Shown: positions 2,620 through 15,582 of the stretch, one piece after another
Layout of the letters: every line of letters starts with the position of its first letter
Position numbering within the stretch: the stretch's first letter is position 1
NCBI GenBank assembly: GCA_025558095.1
Contig: JAIVFI010000003.1
Location: 620,001-684,000 of the forward strand
Direction: 5' to 3'
Origin: Hyaloraphidium curvatum SAG 235-1
Taxonomy: Eukaryota; Fungi; Monoblepharomycota
Length of the DNA stretch: 64,000 nucleotides
The notes under the pieces: model-generated
Databases searched by the model: none
Told to the model about the DNA's origin: nothing
Seen by the model: only the letters and a program-made list of their open reading frames with translations
Translations under genes and position numbers: made by a program

Positions 2620-3824
2620 TCAGTTGTTGAACTTGACGCTGTACGATCCTGTTGCGGGATCCTGGACCATTTGGAAGTTGTCTGTAGACAGACCAAACCG
2701 TCCCAAGATACTGTTTCCGAGCTCCTTCAGCTTGCCTGCGCAACTGTCAGTTCGGTCTCACGAAGCGGGCGCGTAACTCACCGATCATTTCGTCCTTTTC
2801 GTTATCAGCCTTGGCTCTGATGCGGGCAGGCAAAGTCAACACCGCGTTTCTAGCCTCTTTGTTCAGCGGCTCCAACGCCACCAGCTTCTTGTAGTCTGTC
2901 CAACGTCTCGTCAGCTTGAGCCACGAGGCACCATGGGGAAGTTGCCCACCTTCCAAAGCTTCTGACAGCGCGGTAGAGGTATCCAGTTTCTCGTTCGCGA
3001 ATGCACGCCTTTGCAGCGCTTTGACGTAATCCGGCTTCTCTTCAAGAGCTGGGAAGGCAATCAGAGGCGTCAACAATCGAAACGCAAATCACCCACCTCT
3101 CGAGCAATTCAAGACGGCCTTCTGCCAGTCAGACAACTTGACATAGCATGCTGCTTTGTTCGAGAAGTAAATCGCCCGCTCCTCCTTGAACGTGTCTGGG
3201 CAGACCCGCAAGGCCTCGTCGTAGGAGTGAATCGCTTCCTGGAACAGTCCCCGCCCAAAGAGGTCGTTGCCCTCCCCCTTGAACGAACGAGACTCCTCGA
3301 GTAGACGCTTGATCGATCTTCAGTCCTGCTGTCCCGACGCGGCCGAAGCACGTGCCCACCTCCATCTCCGCCGGGCTGACAATGCTCTCGATCGTCTCGT
3401 CCTCCTCTTCACCAGCACCACCAACACCCGCATCCGATGCCTCATCGTCCTCAGATTCGACGATTCGGACGGAACCCTCCGCGTCCGACTCTTCTGCCGG
3501 GGCTTTGGCCCGAGCAGGCGCAGGCGGGGCCTTCGGAACCTCTGGTCGGTCCAGACGCGTCGCGATCATGTCCGGGGGCGTGCTCCGGCCTCCAGGATTG
3601 ACATCGTCAAAGATCTTGGCGAAAGTCTCCTCGACGCCGCTGGGAAACGTCGTTGGCGGCAGGTGGTCGAACTTCCGGTAAAACGCGTTGCGGTCAAAGC
3701 CGACCCCCGGAACAGGCCCCGGACGCGGCGGAACGTCGACGTTTTCGTGTTCGTCCGCCGAATAGAACTCTTCTTCTCCGTCATCGGACGTCGCAGGGTC
3801 GTCCGGACGGGAGTCGAGTGCCAT
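2620..3824 (-). CDS. TTC1: Tetratricopeptide repeat protein 1 (TTC1-like; spliced)
   Basis: Acidic N-terminus; TPRs [33 protein letters not shown] and [17 protein letters not shown]; characteristic C-terminus [36 protein letters not shown]. Confidence 0.9.
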
Positions 3825-3932
3825 TGTTGTCCGGCGTGATCGAACTGCGCTCGCGCGAGCCCGCGTTCCGGACCGAAATGGACCAGCCTCCATGCAGATC
3901 GGCACCACATTCAATTTATGTACACCAGAAGA

Positions 3933-4547
3933 TCATCGGCTGTAGCTCCAGGAGTTCTTCAGGTCTGGCGTCCCGGGCCACGTTAGCATGCCGACGCCTC
4001 CGAACAAGCGACGCAACCCACATCCGTCCTTCGTCGCCAACCGGTCCAAGCTGTCGTTCGACTCGCCCTGAGCCCGCACGAAACCCGAGAACGCGTACGT
4101 GGTGAAGGTGCCAGTCAGCCGGCCCGTCGCGTCCACGTCGCCGACGTTGATCTGGACCGAGGCGTGGTCCTTCGCGGGAATGAGCCGACCAGTGGCGGAG
4201 CTGCAGCAAAGGAACAAGGAAGGCCATTAAGTCCCTGTCCAGAACACACCGACCCGGTCCCCCGGTAACCCAAGTGGAGACCGATCCAGTGAAAAGGTTC
4301 CGCAGGCTGCGCAAGTTCCCTGGCCACTCAAGGCGACACAGCCGACCTCTGCCCACACGAAAAGCTCCATCGTCTCGCTCCAACAGACCCGAGTCCCGGT
4401 CAGAGGAGGCAGAGGATCCTGCGTGCCAATGCCATTGCCCCAAGCTCAACCGCCCGCCGAGCCTAGCACGCCCGCCCGAGTGCCTCGTGATACTCACCAT
4501 TTCCGGGGGATGTACAGGTCAACAATCTGGCCCTTGTCGTTCTCCAT
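3933..4547 (-). CDS. RPS21: 40S ribosomal protein S21 (eS21; spliced, 297-nt first intron 4201-4497)
   Basis: [16 protein letters not shown]|[24 protein letters not shown]...[21 protein letters not shown]|LKNSWSYSR. Confidence 0.97.
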
Positions 4548-4886
4548 CGTTGGTAAGATGCTGCTGGGAGGTTCTCCGTTAGCCCTGGTCCGTTCCCGAA
4601 GTCCCCAGAGTCAGCCTCTGCCCCGTTCCACCGCCCAAGGCGGCGTCGCGGAGCTCCAGCGGCAGAAGACCGCAGAGACTGGCCTCCGTGTTGGCTCGGA
4701 GCCCAGTCGGCCGCAGATGCGACAAGTCCTCGAGGCGACCAGAGAGCACCCTTCCAGCTCGGCGGACCGCCGCGGCCACTGCCAATCGCGGGCCGCCAAA
4801 GGCATCACGTCCACCTCGATGCTCAAGACCAAGCCTACGATACGCACTGAGAAAGGACGCCGGAGGAGTGTGGAGTGGCCGGAGAC

Positions 4887-4925
4887 TTTCCGAAACACTG
4901 CTTGTTGACCGCAAGGTTTCGGAAA
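4887..4925. repeat. Perfect 10-bp inverted repeat (hairpin) near the left end of the transposon
   Basis: TTTCCGAAAC (4887-4896) and GTTTCGGAAA (4916-4925), with an inner CTTG/CAAG pairing. Confidence 0.7.
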
Positions 4926-5093
4926 AGGGCTTACCTAATGTCCGCAGGACCATCCCTCGTTTCACACACAGGTCCCGCTACTCGAGCTTGCCGGAGTCGC
5001 CGCGTGCGAATTTGCAACCGCTAGAGCACAGTCTCCATCGCAAAAGGCGCGTGGTGCCTCCTGCGTCGCATCGGGGAACGGCACGGCCGAAAC

Positions 5094-6110
5094 ATGCTTC
5101 TGAGCGGGCCAGAAACCGCGGTTCGGCTCAAGCAGACCGGCAAGCTTGGCCCGGACGAGATTGCTGCTGTACTCGCAATTCACCGAACGACGTATTTCCG
5201 TTGGATCCGCCGATGTGGGGCTCAGACCGTTCCGGACCATCCCCGCAAGGCCTTCCGCAAGGTGTCCGAGGAAATGGTCCGGCACGTAGTTGACGAGGCC
5301 AAAGCTCGCGTCCGCGTGACGCAAAGGGAGCTCGCTGCTGACCTGGCGGAAAAGTTTGGCGTTTTGGTGTCGCAGCAGCATATCTCGCGGCTGCTGAAGG
5401 CCAACAGGGTCACGAGGAAGAAGCTCACCATTAAGAGCGCCGAAGCCCTGAAACAACCCGAGCGGCACCGCATGTTCCACGAGAGGGTCACTTCCTTTGA
5501 TTTGGGGCGCCTAGGTGCCTTGGACGAGTCCTCATTCCAACTCAACGATCCGGGGCGCTTCGGCTACTCGGAGAAGGGGACTCCCGCCGTCGTATACCTG
5601 CCAGGGAACCGGGGCCCCAAGGTGACCCTTTGCCTCGCCATCTCACCCACTCCGCGACCCGGTAATCACACTGGAAACGTGATCTCGTACCAGATCTACA
5701 GCGGCAACATGAACACCGAGAGGTTCTGTGCTTTTCTCAAGACTATTCGCGCCGGGGCTTGTGGGTCCGAGTCCCTGGGCGTTATCCTGGACAATGCGGG
5801 TTTCCACGGCTCTCCTCTGCGGGCAAGGAAGACCACGGACGGCACGGCAATAATAAAGAACCTCTCGGGCAAGTCGTTCCTTGCGGTCCAGGCCGTAGCA
5901 AAGGCCAACAATCTGAGCCTCATCTACCTGCGACCGAGATCGCCGGAATTTAACCCGACCGAGTACGTGTTTGCCACGATCAAGAACCTCGTGAGGCGGG
6001 ACTGCCCCAGGACGGTGCCGGATCTCGTCCGGTCCATCGAGAGGGCCATTCAAATCGTCGGCCACGGCGATCTGATGGCGACGTTCCGGCACTGCTTGAA
6101 GCTAAGCGAG
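5094..6110 (+). CDS. IS630/Tc1-mariner family DDE transposase domain (HTH + DDE_3)
   Basis: HTH (EIAAVLAIHRTTYFRWIRR), second HTH (TQRELAADLAEKFGVLVSQQHISRLLK..TRKK), catalytic LDESSF (D at 5523), VILDNAGFH (D at 5790), and YLRPRSPEFNPTEYVFATIK (E at 5961). Confidence 0.95.
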
Positions 6111-9100
6111 GCTGAGTTTGTGCGCATCGCGGAATCCGCGTCCGCCGGCAAATGTGTGGCGCGGAAGGTCACACTACAAGGTCAGATCTCTGCCTTTGCT
6201 TCTCCGGCTCCTCAGACGTGCCCTTCCGCGATGGAGGGCGCAGCAGCGACCCAGACCGAAGCAAACGCGGCCGAGCGGCTCGCTGAAGAGGTGGACTGCC
6301 ATGACGGTTGCGCATCGGGCATGCAGACCGCGCTGACTCACGACAACGCCCACTCCGAGCAGGCTCGCAACCTCGGCGTCGCCCACATCAACCCGCACCA
6401 AAAGCACACTTTGCTGACCCTGAGGGAAGTTCTCCACGTCGATGGTTCGGCGAGGGAATTCTTTGGGCCGTGGAACGACTTCACGGACTCCGCTCAAAGG
6501 ACCGCGGGCTTCGACGCTGCGGACGTCCTCGGGGGCCTCTCCAACCTCGGTGAAGCTCCTTTTGAGTTCATCTGTCAGCGGGTGGCATCGGGTCGGGGGT
6601 ACAAGCTGGAGCGCGAGCTTTTCGTCGCGCGCCTCCGGAACATCGTCGCCCGGCGGTGCCGGGTCGCCCCCAGTCTGATCGGACCAGACGCACCGGCACC
6701 CCCCTTTTTCCGCCCCGCGGACGATGGCGCGGATCTGGGACCGCCGTCAGCCCCCGACGTCTCCATCTCCCAGCTGGATAACCTCGCCCGCTATGCCGAC
6801 GTCCCACCGGAACTTAACGTCTCGTTCAAGAAAGCCAGCCGCGCCGCGTTGAAACAGCTGTTTCCGCTCTCAGCCCTTGCAAACGACACCGTGCTGGACG
6901 AGAGGTTCGCCATCCTCCTATCGGGCCTTGTACGAAACGGTCGTGGACCAGAATGGCTACGTGCGCTCGCTGTTTCTCTCTGGGGACAGCTCGGCCCGGC
7001 CGGGAGGGCACGCATGGACAGCTTCGAAACATCCGAGACAGCACGTCGTGCTCTGCATTATGTTCACCAGCCCATTTCGAAGGTCTGTCGGTTGGAGTAC
7101 CTCGAACGCGCGGCTTCGACCGAGTCTCTGCCAAGGAACCTTAGGCAGATACTGGAGGAAGCGTGCCGCACGCTGAAGGACCAGCAGGGCCGCTCGCTTT
7201 TTGATGCGTCGCCCGGCCTGGAGTACTTCCTTGCTTCGCTCTCCCTCCCGCAGCGATGCAAGATAGTCATGGCGGCGCGTTTGCCGGATAGTGTGGCGAG
7301 TCGCAATGCGGAAGGGTGCAAGAGATTCTTCGATTGGGCGGTGTGGAACCCGATGGCGGCCAACGAGGAGGCCCTCGCCATCGAGAATCCGGGTTCCGTT
7401 CCCGTGCTGGTGTGCAATCTCCTGTCGAGCAGCCCCGCAATCCCAAACTGATTTTTGCCCCGGCAGCTGCTTTCGTTCCCGGGCCTTTTCCAGATGAGCC
7501 CGGGCGTACCTGGACTGGATGCAGAGGGCGATAAGCTGCTGGCAACCCTGTTCCTGAAGGCGGAGCAGCTCGGGTGGGAACACTCTTCCATGGTGACGCT
7601 GCGGCTGCTGGAGTCGGGGCCCAAGATGCGCGATTTTACCCTGGACTTGTGCGGTATGCCCGCGCTGGTGCGCGGTAGCAACCCCGAAGCACGGCAGGAG
7701 GCCGCGCGCACCGCGCTCGACGCCAAGCTCCACTTCCTCGCGGAATCCGTTGGACTGCTGGACTTCGGCCGTATCCAGAAGCGGGATTGTCCGCTCTGTT
7801 CCTTCAGTGTGCAGGTGGAAGGCGAAGTCCCGGCGAAGGCTGGGCGGCGGCGCAAGGTCGCGGCGTCGGGGATGGTGGCTGACGGAGCTGCGCGGGAGCG
7901 TGTCTATGACGCCGAGCTTCGGCTCCTCCACCACGTCAAGGGTGCGCACCTCACCTGCAGAGCGTGCCCGGGGAAGGGACATCAGTTCGACCTCGAGAGT
8001 GAGTTCCGGCAGCATGTCGAGGAGAACCACCGTGGGGCGTGAGTTGCACCGCGCTTTCCATGCATGCCTGGGACCGATGCGAAGCTGACCGCCGCCGCGG
8101 ACAGTTTGGTCGCCCCAAGGAATCTCACCACGTCGTTCGGCCAGTTCATTGCCAACGCACACTACATTGTCCCGTTCGCGTCGACAAACCTCAAAGCCAA
8201 CATTCCTACGGGCCTCGGCGGCTCGTCCTGCCCTTTCTGTTTCGCCGGTGGCGGGAGGCACCGGCAGGAGTGCTCTCCGAAGCGGCGGTGGGTCGCGCTC
8301 AACGGCTTCCTCGCACTTGGCGACCCCCAGCACGAGCGATACAAGACGATGACGGAGCTGGCCGTCGAGTGGTTCCCGGCGGCCGAGGTGTGCCACCCAT
8401 GGGCGCGGGGCCCGTACGAGCAAGTCGGGCCCCTCATCACCAAGGCCTGCACCCTCGCCGCCATCTTATTCAAGATCATCTGGACCAAGATCTTGTTGCA
8501 GATCCACAACAAAGAGCTCCCGGACCAAGACGGATCCGTCACGCAGGACATGCTCGCCAGCTTTCCCCCGTCTTACGTCGCAAAGATTGCCATCCACGCC
8601 GTGCTTGGTGCCGGCCAGATGTCCGCCGCTGTTGGAACCCGCCGCGCGGGAAAGCAGAAGTCGGCCGGGCTCGGTGCTGGGGCGAGATACTCGGGCCATT
8701 CGGGGGCGCCAGGAGTGGAGCAGCTTGTGGACGGCGGTCCGGACCTCGGAGCCAACGACGACGATCGAGACGAGGTGCTCGAGGACGTTGACTTCGAGGA
8801 CGATGACGACGCGATGGCCGAGGACCAGACCGGCGCCAAGATCTTGGCCGACTTCTTGCACGGCGAGCTGGATCAGATTGAGGACGAGGACTTGGTTACG
8901 GCTGAGGACACCCCCGATCTCTCGCAGGTTGCTGATCAGGGCGCACCGTCCGTTCTCACCGTCGCGGAGCACAACGCAGCGGCAAAGCTTGTCCGCAAGG
9001 CGGCCGTTGCTGCGTTTGCAGAGGCGCGGGAACTTGTGGGCGAGACGTACGACAAGCTCAGGCCGCTTTTCGTGCAGGGACCTTTGCTCCGCTATGCCGA

Positions 9101-12100
9101 GCAGGTCGCTTTCAACCGAGCTCGAAGCGTGCCGCAGCGGCTGCTGACTGCGCTCAAGGTTCTCATCCGTCGCTTCCTACGCGGGGAGGTGAACGCGGGC
9201 GTCGGCCGGAGGCGGATTGGCCCAATCCTCAGCTACGCTCTGGCAAAGCTCGGATATGGGGACGACGACTTCTCCAATTTCCCGTTCGAAAGCGCATTTG
9301 GCTGTGGTCTCGCCGAGGCCACGGAGCTCAGGGTCGGGCTGGGGAGGCTCCTCCGGCCGTTCAGAGGCTTGCAGCTGAACCGGATCGTTGACCTCCGGGA
9401 TTCAAAACAGAAGCCGCCGGTGCCGGCAACCGTTTCGCAGCGGAGGGTTATCGCTCGGGTCCTGCAGGACAAGCAGGCGGGCAACCCCGTGGCGGCCGCG
9501 GTGCGAACCGTGAACCTGCCGAAGGGCAAGCCGCGCGGAAAGGTCGACGCGGAAACGGAGGCGGTGCGCAGCTACCTCCAGAACATTTGGGAGACGCTGC
9601 CGCGGGCCTCACCTGCGGAGAAGGCTGACTTGCGAAAGGTGGAGCTGCAGGAGCTGAGGGACTGGGTGGTTGCAAACCGTCTACAGCTTCGGAGCATCCC
9701 CTTCCGCTACCCGGCCGTGACCACGGCAACGATTCGGTCGACAGAGCAGAAACCCAAGTTCTGGGTCCCCGAGCACGCCGAGGACATGAACGAGGCGGCG
9801 GCGGCGGCATTGGTGGGGCAGAACCGGCCCCACTGGGAAAGCGAGAAGCTTCTGGTGGCGCGGATGAGCGAGTATGACCTCGACAAGTGTCGTTCATCCA
9901 CGAACCCCGCGGACGAAGCCTTCGGCTTCCAGATGTGCTTCATCGCCCTGCACGAGCTCGAAAAGCAGGACGAGGCGCTGAAGAAGAGGGCCGCGTCCGC
10001 GGCTGCTGCACTGCCGAAACCTGGAACGGCGCGGAGGACGAGCACCGCCAGGGACCCCGATTCAACCCCAACTTTCCCAACCATTTCAACTGCTCCGGTC
10101 AAGGACAGGGAGGCTTCGAACAAGACCAGGAGGGCCCGCAACACGTGGCGGCCGCACCGCGTCGAGAAGCGGCATTACAGCAAGAATGGCTCCCCGAAGC
10201 GATGGCACGGGTTCGTCGTGAGCTTCCGTAAGCGCCGACCGCAGCCGGGGCCCGAGGGACTCGCCAAGAAGGAGACCATGGAGACGAAGCGGCGGGAGCG
10301 CAAGGCGGCCGCCGCCGCCGCGATGGCGGGGCTTGGCGCCGCCCAGACCGGCAAGGAAAAGGCAGCCTCGTGGGCGCGGCGGAAGCTTCGGGCTGCGGTC
10401 GCCGAAATCAGCTTGTCCCCCGTGACCGTCTACATCTCGGCCTCGGATCTGCCCGAGTTTTTGTCCAAGCTGGGCGTGGAGGTCGCGCCTGGCATCGACA
10501 CCTCGCGCGTTGACTCGGACTACCTATTCGGCCACCTGCTCAACGGCGGCAACCAACTCGTCAACGAGGACCGGCTCTTCCGCCTCCGTCAGCAGGGCAA
10601 AGTCTCGGCCAGGGGCCATGCCGCCGCCACGCAGCCCATCTATCGTCGCACCGCGGACGTTCTGAGGTACTCCGGCGTCCGGGGCATCTATCATTGCGGC
10701 AGCACCCTGGGCATTCTTAACGAAGAAGTCTCCTTCGTGGAAAAGGTCTCGTTCCAGCAGTCGCAGCAGCAGGAGCGGCAAAACACGACACAGGACGTCG
10801 AGCCGCCAAAGCGCGCAGCGCATTCGCCAGCAGCCGCGCCGGCTCCTCCTGTTCAAACTCGGCCCACCGTCTCCGTTCCCGCCGCAGCTCATGTGCCCGC
10901 CGGTCTTGCTGCTTTCGAAGTGGATGTTTCGTTCCCTCGCGATGTTCCGATGGATCCCTACCCGCCGCTCTACACCGGTCCATGGCTGCCAAACGGCGAT
11001 CCGGACCCGCCGTGCGACATGGCTGTCTTCGATGGTGGGCATTTTGCTCAGTGACGCACGGGTTCGGAGGCTGATCGGATCCTCACTTTTCCAGGCCAGA
11101 ATCGGATTTGGCATGGGGGCATGGTCTACTACCTGCAGGCGACGGCCCAAGGGGACGAATCGGTCCCGATGGATTGGGAGCCCTCTTATTGTGCCAGCAG
11201 CAACCTTAACTTCACCACCATGCCTTCCGAGCCTCCGGCGGACTGCGGCATCCCCGCCGCGGTCCCGCCGGAACCCCCGCCCTTTAACTCCTTCGTCGAA
11301 CCACCAGCCTCGACTTCTCTCCCTGCCTCCATTCCCCCGGAACCGCCCCCGCATTGGGTGCACGACCCGTGCTCGTGCTGTCAAGATGCCGCCTGCAAGG
11401 CCGTGGACTGTGCGCCCAACGTGTTCGCGCCCCTGAGCTCGGGGCACAACGACCCTCCCTGCGCGACTGTCTCGCCCGGTGACTCGGTGCCCGAGACTTC
11501 TGTGCATCCATGCGCGGCCCTTCCTTTCCCCGACTTCTCGCCGCCACTTCCTTCCCCCTTCCTTTCTTGCTTCCCTCCCGAAGTCGTCGTTTGCGCGGTC
11601 GAACCGTCGCCGCCGACGGTAACGGTCGAGGGCAAGTTCGCTGCCCCCGTACCTCCTCAGCTGGCCCCGACCCCGGTTCCGCTCCCGCCGCGTTCTGCCG
11701 AGCCGTTGCCGCGGCCCCCGGTCGACTTCAAGACTGGCATTCCCGTCTACTACCTCAGCCGCCCTGACCATGTGTCCGTGCTGGCACCCAATCTCCTGCA
11801 CATGCCGACGCAGGCGGAAATGTTCGAGCGGGCCGAGCGCGGCGAGCCAGTGGAGGGCGGGGTCGTCGACGTGGATCCGAATCGCTGGTTTCTGGCTGTT
11901 GCCAACCGCCGCGTCGACGTGCGGCTCGTTGCCAAGAGCCTGAACCCCGGGCCGAACGGACGCTACGACTTCGCCAACAGTCATCTGCCGGGGACAACGG
12001 AGCGCATCACCGTGACCAATGCCGACGGCACCAAGTCGCACTACGTGCCGAAGCGGGCGAACCCGTCCAAGGCCGACGGTTCCGTCAGCTTCGGGAGGAT

Positions 12101-13466
12101 CGTCGGCTTCCACCTAGAGCACTCCTGCTCCGATACTAAGCGGATCGCAAGGTCTTTCGGTCCGTCGCCGCCTGCCGCTGGAGCGTGCAGACACCACCCG
12201 CTCTGGGAGCCCAAGATCTCGGAGTTCAAGCCGCCGGCGCCCGATTCGCGCCCCAACGACGCTGCAAAGGCGGAGAAGCACGCTCGGCGCAACGTCGAAC
12301 TGTTCCCGACCCCTGGCGGCTGCACGGACGAGTTTGGTGCCAAGCTGTGGGGCGAGGTCGCTGGTGCCGGCCGTGCGGGGACCCCGGCGCTGCCGGAGCT
12401 CATCCTCGGTGTTCCGGCCAAGCTCGACCGCCGCCTGTGCGGCTACGACAAGGCGGCCGCGCGTCTGAATGCCACCAAGCGGACCACCATGCTGGACGTC
12501 AACGATTGCGAGGGCAACCCTGTGCAGAAGTCTCTCCACGATTTCGAGCGCGACCTGCCCTCTCAACGCACAACGAACAGTGCAGCCTTCTCGGACTACA
12601 CGAGGGCGCTGCTGCCACAACTCGACCGCATCCTGGACGTCTACTGTTCCGGAGAACGGAGGTGGGCAAGCCAATCCCTGTGGCAACGACTTCGCTCACG
12701 CATCCTGCAGCCTGGATCGTGTGCGCACGATTCGCCGGCGCCGCGAGGTCCTCAGCTGGATCTGTCGCGACATGTGTCGCAACCCGTATTCGGGCAAGTA
12801 CGATCCACAGACGACCATCGCATACGGCGCCGCGCGATTCGGCCATGCGAGCAAGGGCGGCCCGGCCTCCCGGATCGTTCGCTTCAGGGCGGAGCTGGCC
12901 AAGGCCGGGATCATGGTCTTGGTCAACGAGTACCTCACGTCCCAAATGTGCAGCTGGTGCGGCAGCCGCCGTGATCATCCGACTCGCCTGACGTCCTTTC
13001 CAGCTGCAAGACCACCTATGTCGTCGGAATCCGGAACCCCGGCTCCAAGGGCGAGGTGCGCGGGGTGAAATACTGTCCCCTCTGCCGCCGCTTCTGGATG
13101 CGCGACGTGAACAGTGTGCACTCCATGGAGCACCTCTTCTGGTTCGGCCTCATCACCGGAGGGGAGCGCCCCTGGCCGTTCAGGCCGGACACCAGGAAGC
13201 CGAAGCCGCAGCCCAAGCTCCGAGCTGGGACTGGTGCAGCGCCGCGCAAGTCCGCGGGTGAGCGCGCTCGCATTCGCGACGGTCATCCCGAGCGTCATCC
13301 CGAGCTGATCCGGGAGCTCCAGGTGCCGCCACAGGCCGCAAGCGTACGGCCGCAAGCGCCGCGAATGGGTCGGTCAAGAAGCTCAAGCCGGCAAGCTGAC
13401 CTGGCCGCGGAAACAGTTACAAGTTGGCGTGCCATGCACCGCGTGGGCGCCATTGCATTTGCTTGA
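5094..13466 (+). CDS. Predicted spliced transposase-Fanzor fusion, ~2,697 aa; exons 5094-7409, 7467-8038, 8105-11034, 11095-12661, 12711-12956, 13004-13466
   Basis: Five GT..AG introns of 57, 66, 60, 49 and 47 nt, each with a CTGAY/CTCAC-type branch site. Each one removes the in-frame stop or frame change between consecutive ORFs (5094..7451, 7455..8042, 8064..11054, 11121..12974, 12469..13068, 13056..13466). Confidence 0.72.
11860..13190 (+). CDS. Fanzor (TnpB-family) RuvC nuclease and zinc-finger region, split by two introns
   Basis: RuvC-I VVDVDPNR (D at 11874); LPSQRTTNSAAFSDYTRALLPQLDRILDVY; TTIAYGAARF; RuvC-II LVNEYLTSQMCSCC (E at 12928); zinc finger ..VRGVKYCPLC; RuvC-III FWMRDVNS (D at 13104); C-terminal RPWPFR motif typical of Fanzor1. 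Confidence 0.92.
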
Positions 13467-13505
13467 TCGAGGTGGAGTCCGTCAGGGACCGCCTTTTATT
13501 CGCAG

Positions 13506-13578
13506 GCTCGATGATGAACATTGCTGCTAGGCCGCAAAGGATTGCGGCACAGGGGGCACAGTAGCAGTTTCTGAGAGT
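13506..13578 (+). ncRNA. Structured RNA candidate with box C/D motifs (omegaRNA scaffold or snoRNA)
   Basis: ATGATGA (13511-13517) and CTGA (13571-13574), closed by a GCTC/GAGT stem. Internal 9-bp stem 13520-13528/13560-13568 and a perfect 7-bp hairpin GCCGCAA-AGGA-TTGCGGC (13531-13548). Confidence 0.5.
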
Positions 13579-13600
13579 GTAGCTACCAACTTCCGCGTCA

Positions 13601-15582
13601 ATGGTAGCACTCCAGAGAGCGTTCCTGCCACTTCCACTGATGCATCGCACGCTATCTCACCCAGTCGAACGCGGAGGAGGGGTCGGTGGCGGACGAGGAG
13701 GAATGGAACGACTGGGAGCTGCCCCCGGAGCACGAGTTCCGGTTCGAGGTGGACTTTGGCGCGACCGTGTCCCTAAAGGTCGGTTTGGGCCCATTCTGGA
13801 AATCATGTGATCTGTGGAGCGGGGCGGAATGGCGACATGAGCGACCCCAGCCTCACGGAGCTCGTGGACTGTGGTGTGGGGCCGATCGTCCTGCACGGCG
13901 CCCCCAGGGAGGCCTTCGAGGACTTCAGGAACATCAATTCTTACTTGTGCTCTCTAATCTCTGTCTTCTCCTTGCAGCTCCGTTCCGGGAACGCCGAGAT
14001 TTTCGGGACCGAGATACCCGTGGACCGCGAGCTCGAGTTCTCGGGCCGCAAGCTGGCGGTCTTTACGTACCACGGATGCGTGCTTGCCGTCAAGGGCAAG
14101 CCCTCGGTGGAATATGTTGCCGACGAGACCCCGATGTCGAGCTACTTCAACACCCACCTGGCGCTGCAGCAGATCCGCGAGGCCGCTGCCGGGTCCGAGG
14201 GCCCGCGGGCAAGTCTGCGCCTTTCATGGCTTGTCACAGAGACTGACACTTAAGCCTGTCAGGTTATGGTGGTCGGCCCGTCAGACGTCGGCAAGAGCAC
14301 ATTGGCCCGCATCCTGCTCAACTATGCAGTGCGCAACGAGCAGGTGCCGTTGTTTGTCGATCTTGACACCAACGAGGTTCGATGTTCTGCTGCTTGATCG
14401 CCTTGTAGCTTACACCTTCTGTGAGCAGGGCTCCGTTTCGGTACCCGGCTGCCTTTCCGCGACCCCAATCACCCGGGTCATCGATCCCGAGGAGGACTTC
14501 TCCGCGTCCGCGGCAACCACTTCGCTTGCCCCCCTGGTGTTTTACTACGGGCAGACGACGCCGCTCGACAAGCCGAAGCTGTTCTCCCAGCAGATGACCG
14601 CCCTTGCTGACATCGTGCAAAAGAAGCTGGATGTCGACGCGGAAGGTTGGAAGCATTGGACTTTGGTGTGCCTGCCCGTGCTTGACGGATGTTCCTCTAC
14701 TCGCAGTGCGCACTGCAGGGCTGATAATCAACACGCCTAGCGAGTTTGCGGAAGCCTCGGGCAAGGACCTGCTCGCGCTCGCCATCAAGGAGTTCAAAGG
14801 TCGGTCCGATCGTCAATTTGGGAAGGGCCAGTGGTCGCTGATTACCATATGTGCTTAGTGAACGTCCTTTTGGTGATTGGCAACGAGCGCCTGCACAGCG
14901 AGCTTTCGCGCAAGTACAAGAAGGGCGTCTCCGTCGTCAAGCTGGCAAAGTCGGGCGGGGTGAGACATGCCAGTCCTGTTTCCCGTAAGGATTGCTCATT
15001 CGGCCGCCATGCTCAGGTTGTTTCGCGCGACAAGAACTTCCGAAAGCAGCTGCAGAACCGTTCTGTTCGAGAGTACTTCTACGGAACGGCCAAAGCCGAA
15101 CTGCTCCCCTACAGCACCAGCCTACCGTTTGTGGACACCGTCATCCGACGAATAGGGAATGGCGAGTGCGGACGATGGGCGCCAGTCCCTCGCTGACGTG
15201 CTTTTCCCGCCAGCCCCTTCGTACCTCTCGCTCGCAATGGAGCGCGAAAAGTACGAGTCTAGGATGATCAAGGTCGATCCCAGCGACATCCTGCTCAGCT
15301 TTGTCCTTGCCGTGTCGTCGGTCGATGCGCCGAGCACTGAGAAGCAAGGTGCGACCGCGGTGGACGAGGACGCCGAGAGCAAGCTACTCATTGAAGGACC
15401 TGTCATGGGCTTTGTCTACATGTGAGGATGCTGCGTTCAATCCCGTCTCTGTCCTGCTGCTGAAACCGCGCCGCAGATCCGAGGTAGTGACGAACCAATC
15501 TAGAATGAACGTTTTGATACCCTCGCCGGGCCGCTTGCCGCGGAAGTACATGATAATGGGCACCCTGACCTGGCGCGAATAG
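13601..15582 (+). CDS. CLP1: Polyribonucleotide 5'-hydroxyl kinase / mRNA cleavage factor Clp1 (spliced; first exon is the ATG alone)
   Basis: ATG|intron 13604-13664|[59 protein letters not shown]; Walker [14 protein letters not shown]; GLIINTP; VVKLAKSGG; REYFYG; PSPGRLP. Confidence 0.96.

Follow-up and report, generated by a model that had tools for sequence, protein, structure and literature searches.

A Fanzor1 nuclease gene probably completed by intron removal within a recently mobile DDE_3 transposon of the fungus Hyaloraphidium curvatum

Fanzors are TnpB-like relatives of the CRISPR-Cas12 nucleases that are guided by an omega RNA. To our knowledge, no other RNA-guided DNA nucleases are known from eukaryotes, and Fanzors are under development as compact genome editors. 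The catalytic residues of the Spizellomyces punctatus Fanzor1 protein, SpuFz1 (PDB 8GKH, 9CEU-9CEZ), are D383, E541, and D606 (PMC11423790); in the numbering of its fusion to maltose-binding protein (MBP) they are D777 (VIDPNKRD), E935 (LLDEYKTSS), and D1000 (WNRDMLS). Fanzors have Gly or Pro at the position of the canonical RuvC-II Glu, and an alternative Glu downstream of it is essential in ApmFNuc (PMC10530073). Fanzor1 residues G500 and E536, which are 36 residues apart, are extremely conserved (PMC3627910). Some Fanzor1 genes are borne by Mariner/Tc1 elements (Bao & Jurka 2013, PMC3627910; Fanzor1c, Jiang et al. 2023, PMC10530073), in which a DDE transposase and the Fanzor1 are separate open reading frames (ORFs) and the target duplications are TA. 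The stretch described here, referred to as the window, comprises 64,000 nucleotides of the fungus Hyaloraphidium curvatum SAG 235-1 (contig JAIVFI010000003.1, positions 620,001 to 684,000), and it contains a transposon that carries a gene of this kind.

We conclude that the region very probably is the 3' end of a Fanzor1 gene whose RuvC site is completed by intron removal and which lies inside a recently mobile DDE_3 transposon (Table 1). An intron-bearing Fanzor1 with a rearranged Glu, a nuclear localization signal (NLS), and a Mariner/Tc1-type partner is an already documented kind of gene; with the Mariner/Tc1-borne Fanzor1 genes (PMC3627910, PMC10530073) the window gene shares a DDE transposase partner, short inverted repeats, introns, and an NLS-like tail. 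Unusual here are a transposase and a Fanzor probably linked in one frame by splicing, an N-terminal region of great length, target duplications of 2 bp that are not TA, and clear signs of recent activity. Whereas the published elements have TA duplications and separate ORFs, the window element has 2-bp duplications of arbitrary sequence, ORFs that are apparently intron-linked in one frame, and ~3.6 kb of extra coding sequence between transposase and nuclease. CrFNuc of Chlamydomonas reinhardtii is likewise a multi-copy, intron-containing Fanzor1 of a unicellular eukaryote, but it resides in Helitron2 elements and the window Fanzor in a DDE_3 element. Bacterial TnpB (ISDra2; PDB 8BF8/8H1J) and Cas12f share with the window gene the RuvC and zinc-ribbon core (TNB, PF07282) and a presumed 3'-end guide; however, their canonical RuvC-II Glu is Gly in the window, and the partner of TnpB is IS200/IS605 rather than a eukaryotic cut-and-paste transposon.

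Several relatives were available for comparison with the window family (family 1). Family 2 (L033, G000:C5:543000-552999, and four copies on C4, C16, C25, and C36) consists of five identical copies with the same layout. In protein sequence it is 44% identical to the window family in the transposase (over its whole length), 84% in exon 5, and 64-68% in exon 6. Two single-copy Fanzor1 paralogs, L031 (G000:C2:394000-403000) and L032 (G000:C2:423000-432999), lie 30 kb apart in the same genome and lack some or all of the introns. L031 has an uninterrupted 686-codon ORF (3237-5294, minus strand) that reads GFDPNRKEF ... AVGAAVFPHNS ... IHEHGSSQKCNRC ... CRTC ... WNRDINSARN. The independent metagenome scaffold L052 (ENA ERZ19025894 scaffold_8283, 10.8 kb), from another GC-rich organism, has the same transposase-then-Fanzor1 layout. 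All searches were performed with single exons or with natural relatives that lack introns.

Splicing was assessed with X1, a public run kept as contigs and mapped over 10900-13700, whose RNA label is a software guess. The X1 contigs skip four GT..AG intervals, which are introns 3 through 6 of Table 1. A first-pass annotation, made from the sequence alone, had proposed introns 4 and 5, and both are skipped exactly; it had missed introns 3 and 6 and the transposon context. The depth within the introns is zero, as shown by bin arithmetic in which the depth of each bin equals its exonic fraction times the contig depth, and only the spliced form was assembled. Retention of the introns in mRNA, which the first-pass annotation had named as the outcome that would speak against it, is therefore contradicted. 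The assembly of this form alone also argues that X1 is RNA. The genome search found no intron-less DNA copy of the window family.

Comparison with the relatives gave the same junctions. Intron 3 has a counterpart at the identical MAV(F/V)D|G position in family 2, and its removal takes out the stop codon TGA 11052, so that a 996-codon ORF (8064-11054) is joined in frame to the nuclease part. At the position of intron 4 there is an intron in family 2 and in L052 (9180-9252) and none in L031. Intron 5 splits a Cys codon within the first CxxC of the zinc ribbon, which thus extends across the intron (12949..13007); L031, L032, and L052 are continuous there (QKCNRCK, NCSDCH, and KRCSRCR, respectively), and in L052 the whole exon 5/6 equivalent is uninterrupted. 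L031 is colinear with the window exons, with no indel at this second junction of the nuclease part (QMCS-C-CK in the window, QKCNRCK in L031). The junctions are thus read straight through in three natural sequences that have no introns there. At the place of intron 6, family 2 has GTACGC..TTGCAG. Removal of intron 6 shifts the C-terminus to the stop at 13397-13399 and an NLS-like tail, so the protein does not run on to 13466 as had been assumed. Family 2 has KR-x..-KKVRL at the place of the NLS-like motif, and we infer that the tail functions as an NLS.

Table 1. Coordinates of the transposon and its parts in the window
Feature	Position	Strand	Description
Mobile element	4957-13585	+	8,629 bp; copies match exactly over this span; flanked by CC (4955-4956, 13586-13587)
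Left terminal inverted repeat	4957-4972	+	T[C/A]GTTTCACACACAGG; sharp boundary in copy alignment
Exon 1	5094-7409	+	DDE_3 (Tc1/mariner/IS630-type) transposase; N-terminal helix-turn-helix (HTH); long C-terminal extension; unspliced stop 7449-7451 (785 aa)
Intron 1 (predicted)	7410-7466	+	57 nt; GTGTGC..CTGAT..GCAG; contains transposase stop
Exon 2 (middle)	7467-8038	+	36% protein identity to family 2
Intron 2 (predicted)	8039-8104	+	66 nt; GTGAGT..CTGAC..ACAG; contains in-frame stop
Exon 3	8105-11034	+	Open frame; large region; 33-41% identity to family 2
Intron 3	11035-11094	+	60 nt; GTGGGC..CTCAC..CCAG; X1 joint, 134 nt on shorter side
Exon 4	11095-12661	+	Pro-rich stretch; RuvC-I VVDVDPNR (Asp 11874-11876); helical region before RuvC-II; X1-covered, no further joints
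Intron 4	12662-12710	+	49 nt; GTGGGC..CTCAC..GCAG; joint in X1 contig
Exon 5	12711-12956	+	IAYGAARFGH strand (Gly 12826-12828); VNEYLTSQ (Glu 12928-12930); first zinc-ribbon Cys 12949-12951
Intron 5	12957-13003	+	47 nt; GTGCGG..CTGAC..TCCAG; X1 joint, 247 nt on shorter side
Exon 6	13004-13257	+	Rest of C4 zinc ribbon (second CxxC 13074-13085); RuvC-III WMRDVNS (Asp 13104-13106); conserved GERPWPFRP tail
Intron 6	13258-13322	+	65 nt; GTGAGC..CTGAT..TCCAG; X1 joint, 231 nt on shorter side
Exon 7	13323-13399	+	C-terminal tail; bipartite NLS-like motif KR-x10-KKLK; stop TGA 13397-13399; read across X1 joint
Non-coding tail and right end	13400-13585	+	186 nt; conserved block ~13424-13500; candidate omega RNA scaffold

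The family assignment was made by profile and by fold. In a profile built only from relatives (27 long database relatives), exon sequence 12712-12954 scored 56.7 bits at profile positions 460-532, 13005-13256 scored 39.8 bits at positions 542-595, and the 3' end of exon 4 scored 10.9 bits at positions 413-452; the three matches abut colinearly, which is what correct splicing predicts. When L031 was used in an exhaustive search, 119 relatives were retrieved, and all of the full-length ones (550-850 aa) had a C-terminal PF07282. A profile from the alignment of these relatives, with the window exons included (profile A4), was compared with solved structures. It matched SpuFz1 best (E 1.6e-44 over ~420 positions), followed by Guillardia theta Fanzor1 (GtFz1, E 8.8e-31) and Parasitella parasitica Fanzor1 (PpFz1, E 1.2e-29); the matches to Mimivirus Fanzor2 (E 4e-11), TnpB (E ~1e-6), and Cas12f (E ~1e-4) were much weaker. 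In an AlphaFold (AF2) model of L031, the predicted local distance difference test (pLDDT) score was ~90 over the half containing RuvC-II, the zinc ribbon, and RuvC-III, and the top four Foldseek matches were all SpuFz1 (E 7e-6 to 4e-5, probability 1.0). By both measures the protein is nearer to Fanzor1 than to Fanzor2, TnpB, or Cas12f, in agreement with the Fanzor1 identity first proposed for it. L031, L032 (in a 211-codon ORF), and L052 passed the Pfam model PF07282 (Cas12f1-like TNB, formerly OrfB_Zn_ribbon; cut-off 26.3) with 32.2, 31.3, and 38.1 bits, respectively, whereas the separate window exons fell below it. No unspliced exon reached any Pfam model, and annotation from unspliced ORFs would miss the gene, as had been suggested. 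Single exons gave no match among phage records either.

The exon pieces translate as first read, with the catalytic candidates encoded by GAT (11874), GAG (12928), and GAC (13104). Their columns are those of SpuFz1 D383, E541, and D606. Like the window, SpuFz1 has a RuvC-I of the IDPNKRD type, a G..F strand without Glu, DEYKTSS where the window has NEYLTSQ, a zinc ribbon, and WNRD. In ~60 relatives no variation occurs at the Gly within (F/Y)-G-x-x-x-F, the Glu within (N/D)-E-x-x-T-S-x-x-C, or the Asp within W-N-R-D; the first two columns are the claimed replacement of the canonical RuvC-II Glu by Gly and its downstream substitute, and they match the published arrangement (PMC10530073). In the window this Gly and Glu are 34 residues apart. 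Upstream of the Glu, a motif h-h-h-x-h-D-P-[G/N]-[K/R] is present in ~24 of the 27 long relatives, and D-P-N-R is invariant in four paralog lineages that are 25-47% identical to one another. DPN had been noted at first as a minor deviation from DPG; however, SpuFz1 (IDPNKRD), L052 (VGAIDPNKRE), and several other relatives carry it, and it is no deviation. The four zinc-ribbon Cys, the flanking motifs, and the Asp/Glu/Asp triad are intact in the four paralog lineages and in L052. These results support the assignment to Fanzor1, the requirement for splicing, and the arrangement of a Gly in place of Glu with a Glu downstream.

The transposon spread very recently and is abundantly transcribed. A genome search found 9-10 copies of the element at ~100% identity, and the copies (10 aligned) differ from that in the window by 9-27 substitutions (0.1-0.3%). 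Three carry damage, namely a 1-nt deletion in C15, a TAG and a loss of the 5' end in C35, and an in-frame deletion of 171 nt in C7b (11228-11398). The window copy has no disrupted exon. Its right terminal repeat (..GAGAGTGTAGCTA, 13573-13585) is an imperfect inverted repeat of the left end, and 11 of 16 positions match when the left end (T[A/C]GTTTCACACAC) is compared with the reverse complement of the right end (TAGCTACACTCTC). Nine of the ten family-1 copies are flanked by 2-bp target duplications (CC, AT, TG, TG, AC, GC, CG, AG, and CC), and in family 2, with left repeat TAGTCGCACACAT and right end ...GTGTGTAGCCA, the duplications CC, CG, and CT match in 3-4 of the 5 copies. The duplications are thus of arbitrary sequence and are not the TA that is a hallmark of Tc1/mariner. 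A TA target duplication, our first reading, was ruled out by family 2, whose terminus is CA where that of family 1 is TA; the terminal TA therefore belongs to the element. At the left end, four copies have A as the second base and six have C. This base (4958) varies together with internal positions such as 5652 and 7128, which indicates that it is inherited with the element.

The transposase matched PF13358 (DDE_3) with E 5.9e-15 and 55.8 bits (cut-off 28.6); its matches to HTH_32, HTH_33, and HTH_Tnp_IS630 were below the cut-offs of those models. The transposase of L052, which is 42% identical, was the sole database relative found for it. Neither the transposase ORF nor P0001 had an exact product on record, and P0001 proved to be the L032 ORF of the same genome and thus not an independent relative. 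Metagenomes were also scanned with the alignment of the four lineages and with a DNA probe from within an exon, and neither scan found anything. About 100 bp past the right end of the element lies a gene for the mRNA cleavage and polyadenylation factor CLP1 (13686-14400; CLP1_N 90.7 bits, CLP1_P 43.5 bits). The insertion therefore sits in the promoter or 5' region of CLP1, and a Fanzor guide taken from the flank would carry CLP1 upstream sequence.

The nuclease makes up the C-terminus of a far larger protein, one of at least ~1,700 and possibly ~2,650 codons, whereas SpuFz1 has ~640 aa. L032 has one uninterrupted 934-codon ORF that extends from the large upstream region into RuvC-I, which shows that a very long N-terminal extension is real in this lineage. 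The 3' part of exon 3 may hold the WED and REC elements of the Fanzor; exon 3 gave no Pfam, Atlas, or profile match (scores in the Atlas feature search were uninformative at <=0.84), and exon 2 gave no Pfam match. Just upstream of RuvC-I, exon 4 contains a Pro-rich, low-complexity stretch of ~150 codons (11200-11700). L031 and L032 each form the C-terminal end of a frame that exceeds 1,800 codons. The upstream part of this frame contains a KGDCLFES motif and weakly matches an OTU-like protease (E 0.026, below the cut-off). The two genes had no DDE transposase next to them, and they may be domesticated or part of a different element. Weak matches to exons 5/6 were also found in long open frames of 446-1,230 codons at G000:C31:259849, C7:693821, C2:359657, C2:417663, C34:485791, C33:354680, and C13:344102; the genome probably holds several more, and more distant, Fanzor-like genes.

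To our judgment the chances are even that the whole element is one gene, in which six short introns would join the DDE_3 transposase, ~1,170 further codons, and the Fanzor1 into a single frame of ~2,653 codons; the seven exons total 7,959 nt, or 2,653 codons, by arithmetic only. Between 5094 and 12974, frame 0 is interrupted only by stops at 7449, 8040, and 11052, the last of which is within transcript-confirmed intron 3. The signals of predicted introns 1 and 2 are those of the four confirmed introns, with a 5' site, a branch-like CTRAY motif, and a 3' site ending in CAG. In family 2, the counterpart of intron 1 (L033:3525-3583, 59 nt, GTGAGC..GCAG) gives exactly the change from frame 3 to frame 2 that the downstream homology requires, and intron 2 also has a counterpart (L033:4165-4218, 54 nt, GTAGGT..CCAG). 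Family 2 otherwise shares the intron positions and needs two further short introns for a single frame; both are present with the right phases (one of 37 nt, GTGAGG..ACAG, and GTAGGT..AACAG). The joined frame would include ~3.6 kb of coding sequence without an assigned function between the transposase and the nuclease.

It is quite possible, however, that the element makes separate proteins, namely a transposase that ends at 7449-7451 and a protein of ~1,700 codons that starts from about ATG 8064 and has the Fanzor at its C-terminus, with the upstream introns unused. Only the four downstream introns are seen in transcripts, which were mapped over 10900-13700 only. The unspliced transposase tail and its stop codon are alike in the two families (..VCNLLSSSPAIPN and ..VSNVLASSSSILG, each followed by the stop). 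The published Mariner-borne Fanzors are separate ORFs (PMC3627910). In L052, where five same-strand genes were called 38-127 nt apart, the junction between the transposase and the next ORF could not be threaded, a strong GTGAGC..CAG candidate leading into a closed frame. Against separate proteins, conserved coding sequence resumes at the predicted 3' splice sites, ahead of any start codon: ATG 7494 of the window corresponds to CCC in family 2, where homology starts at 4217 and the first possible start is at 4283. Nor is there intergenic space for a promoter, and the splice signals and the frame change in family 2 described above are as the single frame would have them. Because the unspliced tail and stop are alike between the families, retention of the first intron may yield a stand-alone transposase even if the single frame is correct.

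The region 13200-13620 had been put forward as the source of a guide RNA. Most of 13200-13399 proved to be coding sequence, together with an intron, and the element ends at 13585; the candidate region is 13400-13585. Within it, 36 nt (13461-13497) are 92% identical between families 1 and 2, compared with 65-71% for coding DNA, and a hairpin (13471-13493) is followed by TTTT (13494-13497). The conserved block, 36-75 nt long with its hairpin and shared by both families, is a candidate for the omega RNA scaffold. Only two lineages align in the tail, too few for covariation, and the tails of the two C2 paralogs do not align with that of the window. Beyond 13585, the X1 contigs extend into the flanking DNA of at least three other copies (one is C7b, and the others are probably C28 and C7a), which is what a flank-derived guide would require. 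The X1 depth is 0 at 13626-13700; transcripts thus do not enter the window copy's own flank, and the window copy may be silent or may terminate differently.

Splicing, as seen in the transcript contigs, joins three exons into the RuvC site, with the Asp of VDVDPNR, the Glu of NEYLTSQ, and the Asp of WMRDVNS. For the steps that follow, we envision a course by analogy with TnpB and the characterized Fanzors. The protein would enter the nucleus by means of its C-terminal tail and bind RNA from the 3' tail of the element that reads into flanking DNA. The nuclease would then cut DNA that matches the flank, for example the empty donor site after excision, and repair from a copy would restore the element.

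That the window protein is a potentially active nuclease is plausible from its sequence. The alternative is that the Fanzor fold is real but the protein is inactive as a nuclease; it could be a passenger in decay, or it could bind DNA with a guide RNA for targeting or regulation only. There is a precedent in CrFNuc, an intron-containing Fanzor1c that bound RNA without cleavage in vitro (PMC10530073). Two features are atypical, namely the huge extension at the N-terminus and some 180 additional residues between RuvC-I and RuvC-II: the RuvC-I Asp and the Glu are ~335 residues apart in the window and 158 in SpuFz1, and mostly 155-180 in the relatives, with a few at 240-375. On the other side, the catalytic triad, the Cys residues, and their flanking motifs are intact across the four paralog lineages and L052, the exons are open in most copies, and the gene is strongly transcribed and correctly spliced. 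We therefore consider inactivity unlikely.

The following results weigh against this explanation of the region. No single window exon matched a Pfam model or a PDB sequence, and a four-lineage profile of exon 4 alone matched no solved Fanzor in the PDB. The N-terminal WED and REC domains of SpuFz1 are not recognizable in the window protein by comparison: profile-profile and BLASTP comparisons of the upstream region with the family profile and the paralogs were not significant, and only a few motifs occurred in the expected order. The RuvC-I segment is poorly modeled in the L031 structure (pLDDT <50 at residues 186-209), and the ~335-residue spacing exceeds the 125-275 range of the 2013 motif. 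Because the model is of low confidence there and the exon 4 profile finds no Fanzor, the RuvC-I Asp is assigned by motif and position, and it is the weakest-supported of the three catalytic residues. The tail folds no better than shuffled sequence (z -1.27) and has no Rfam match. The RNA label of X1 is a guess, though the intron-free contigs argue for RNA. At 11286-11287 the window copy has AA where most copies and the transcript have TT; the expressed copies are thus mostly not the window copy. The most skeptical explanation, that a transposon protein with no relation to TnpB or Fanzor shows a zinc ribbon and acidic residues in this pattern by chance, could draw on the failure of single exons to match Pfam or the PDB, but it is refuted by the colinear matches of 56.7 and 39.8 bits to the relatives-only profile, by the family-profile matches to three solved Fanzor1 proteins at E 1e-29 to 1e-44, and by the concordant Foldseek result, and has almost no probability left.

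The locus thus offers a Fanzor1 that is catalytically intact by sequence, correctly spliced, and strongly transcribed, in a recently moving transposon of a small 32 Mb genome, with a second, diverged family and intron-less paralogs available for comparison. Gene calling that is ORF-based or of the bacterial style misses such genes entirely. If the single frame is correct, nature would have fused an RNA-guided nuclease covalently to a cut-and-paste transposase. Such a protein, of which the literature searched contained no description, could couple guide targeting to excision, homing, or integration, and it would provide a natural precedent for single-chain RNA-guided transposases. With its recent mobility, its expression, and this set of relatives, the element is a practical system for asking whether cutting by a Fanzor aids the persistence or spread of a cut-and-paste element.

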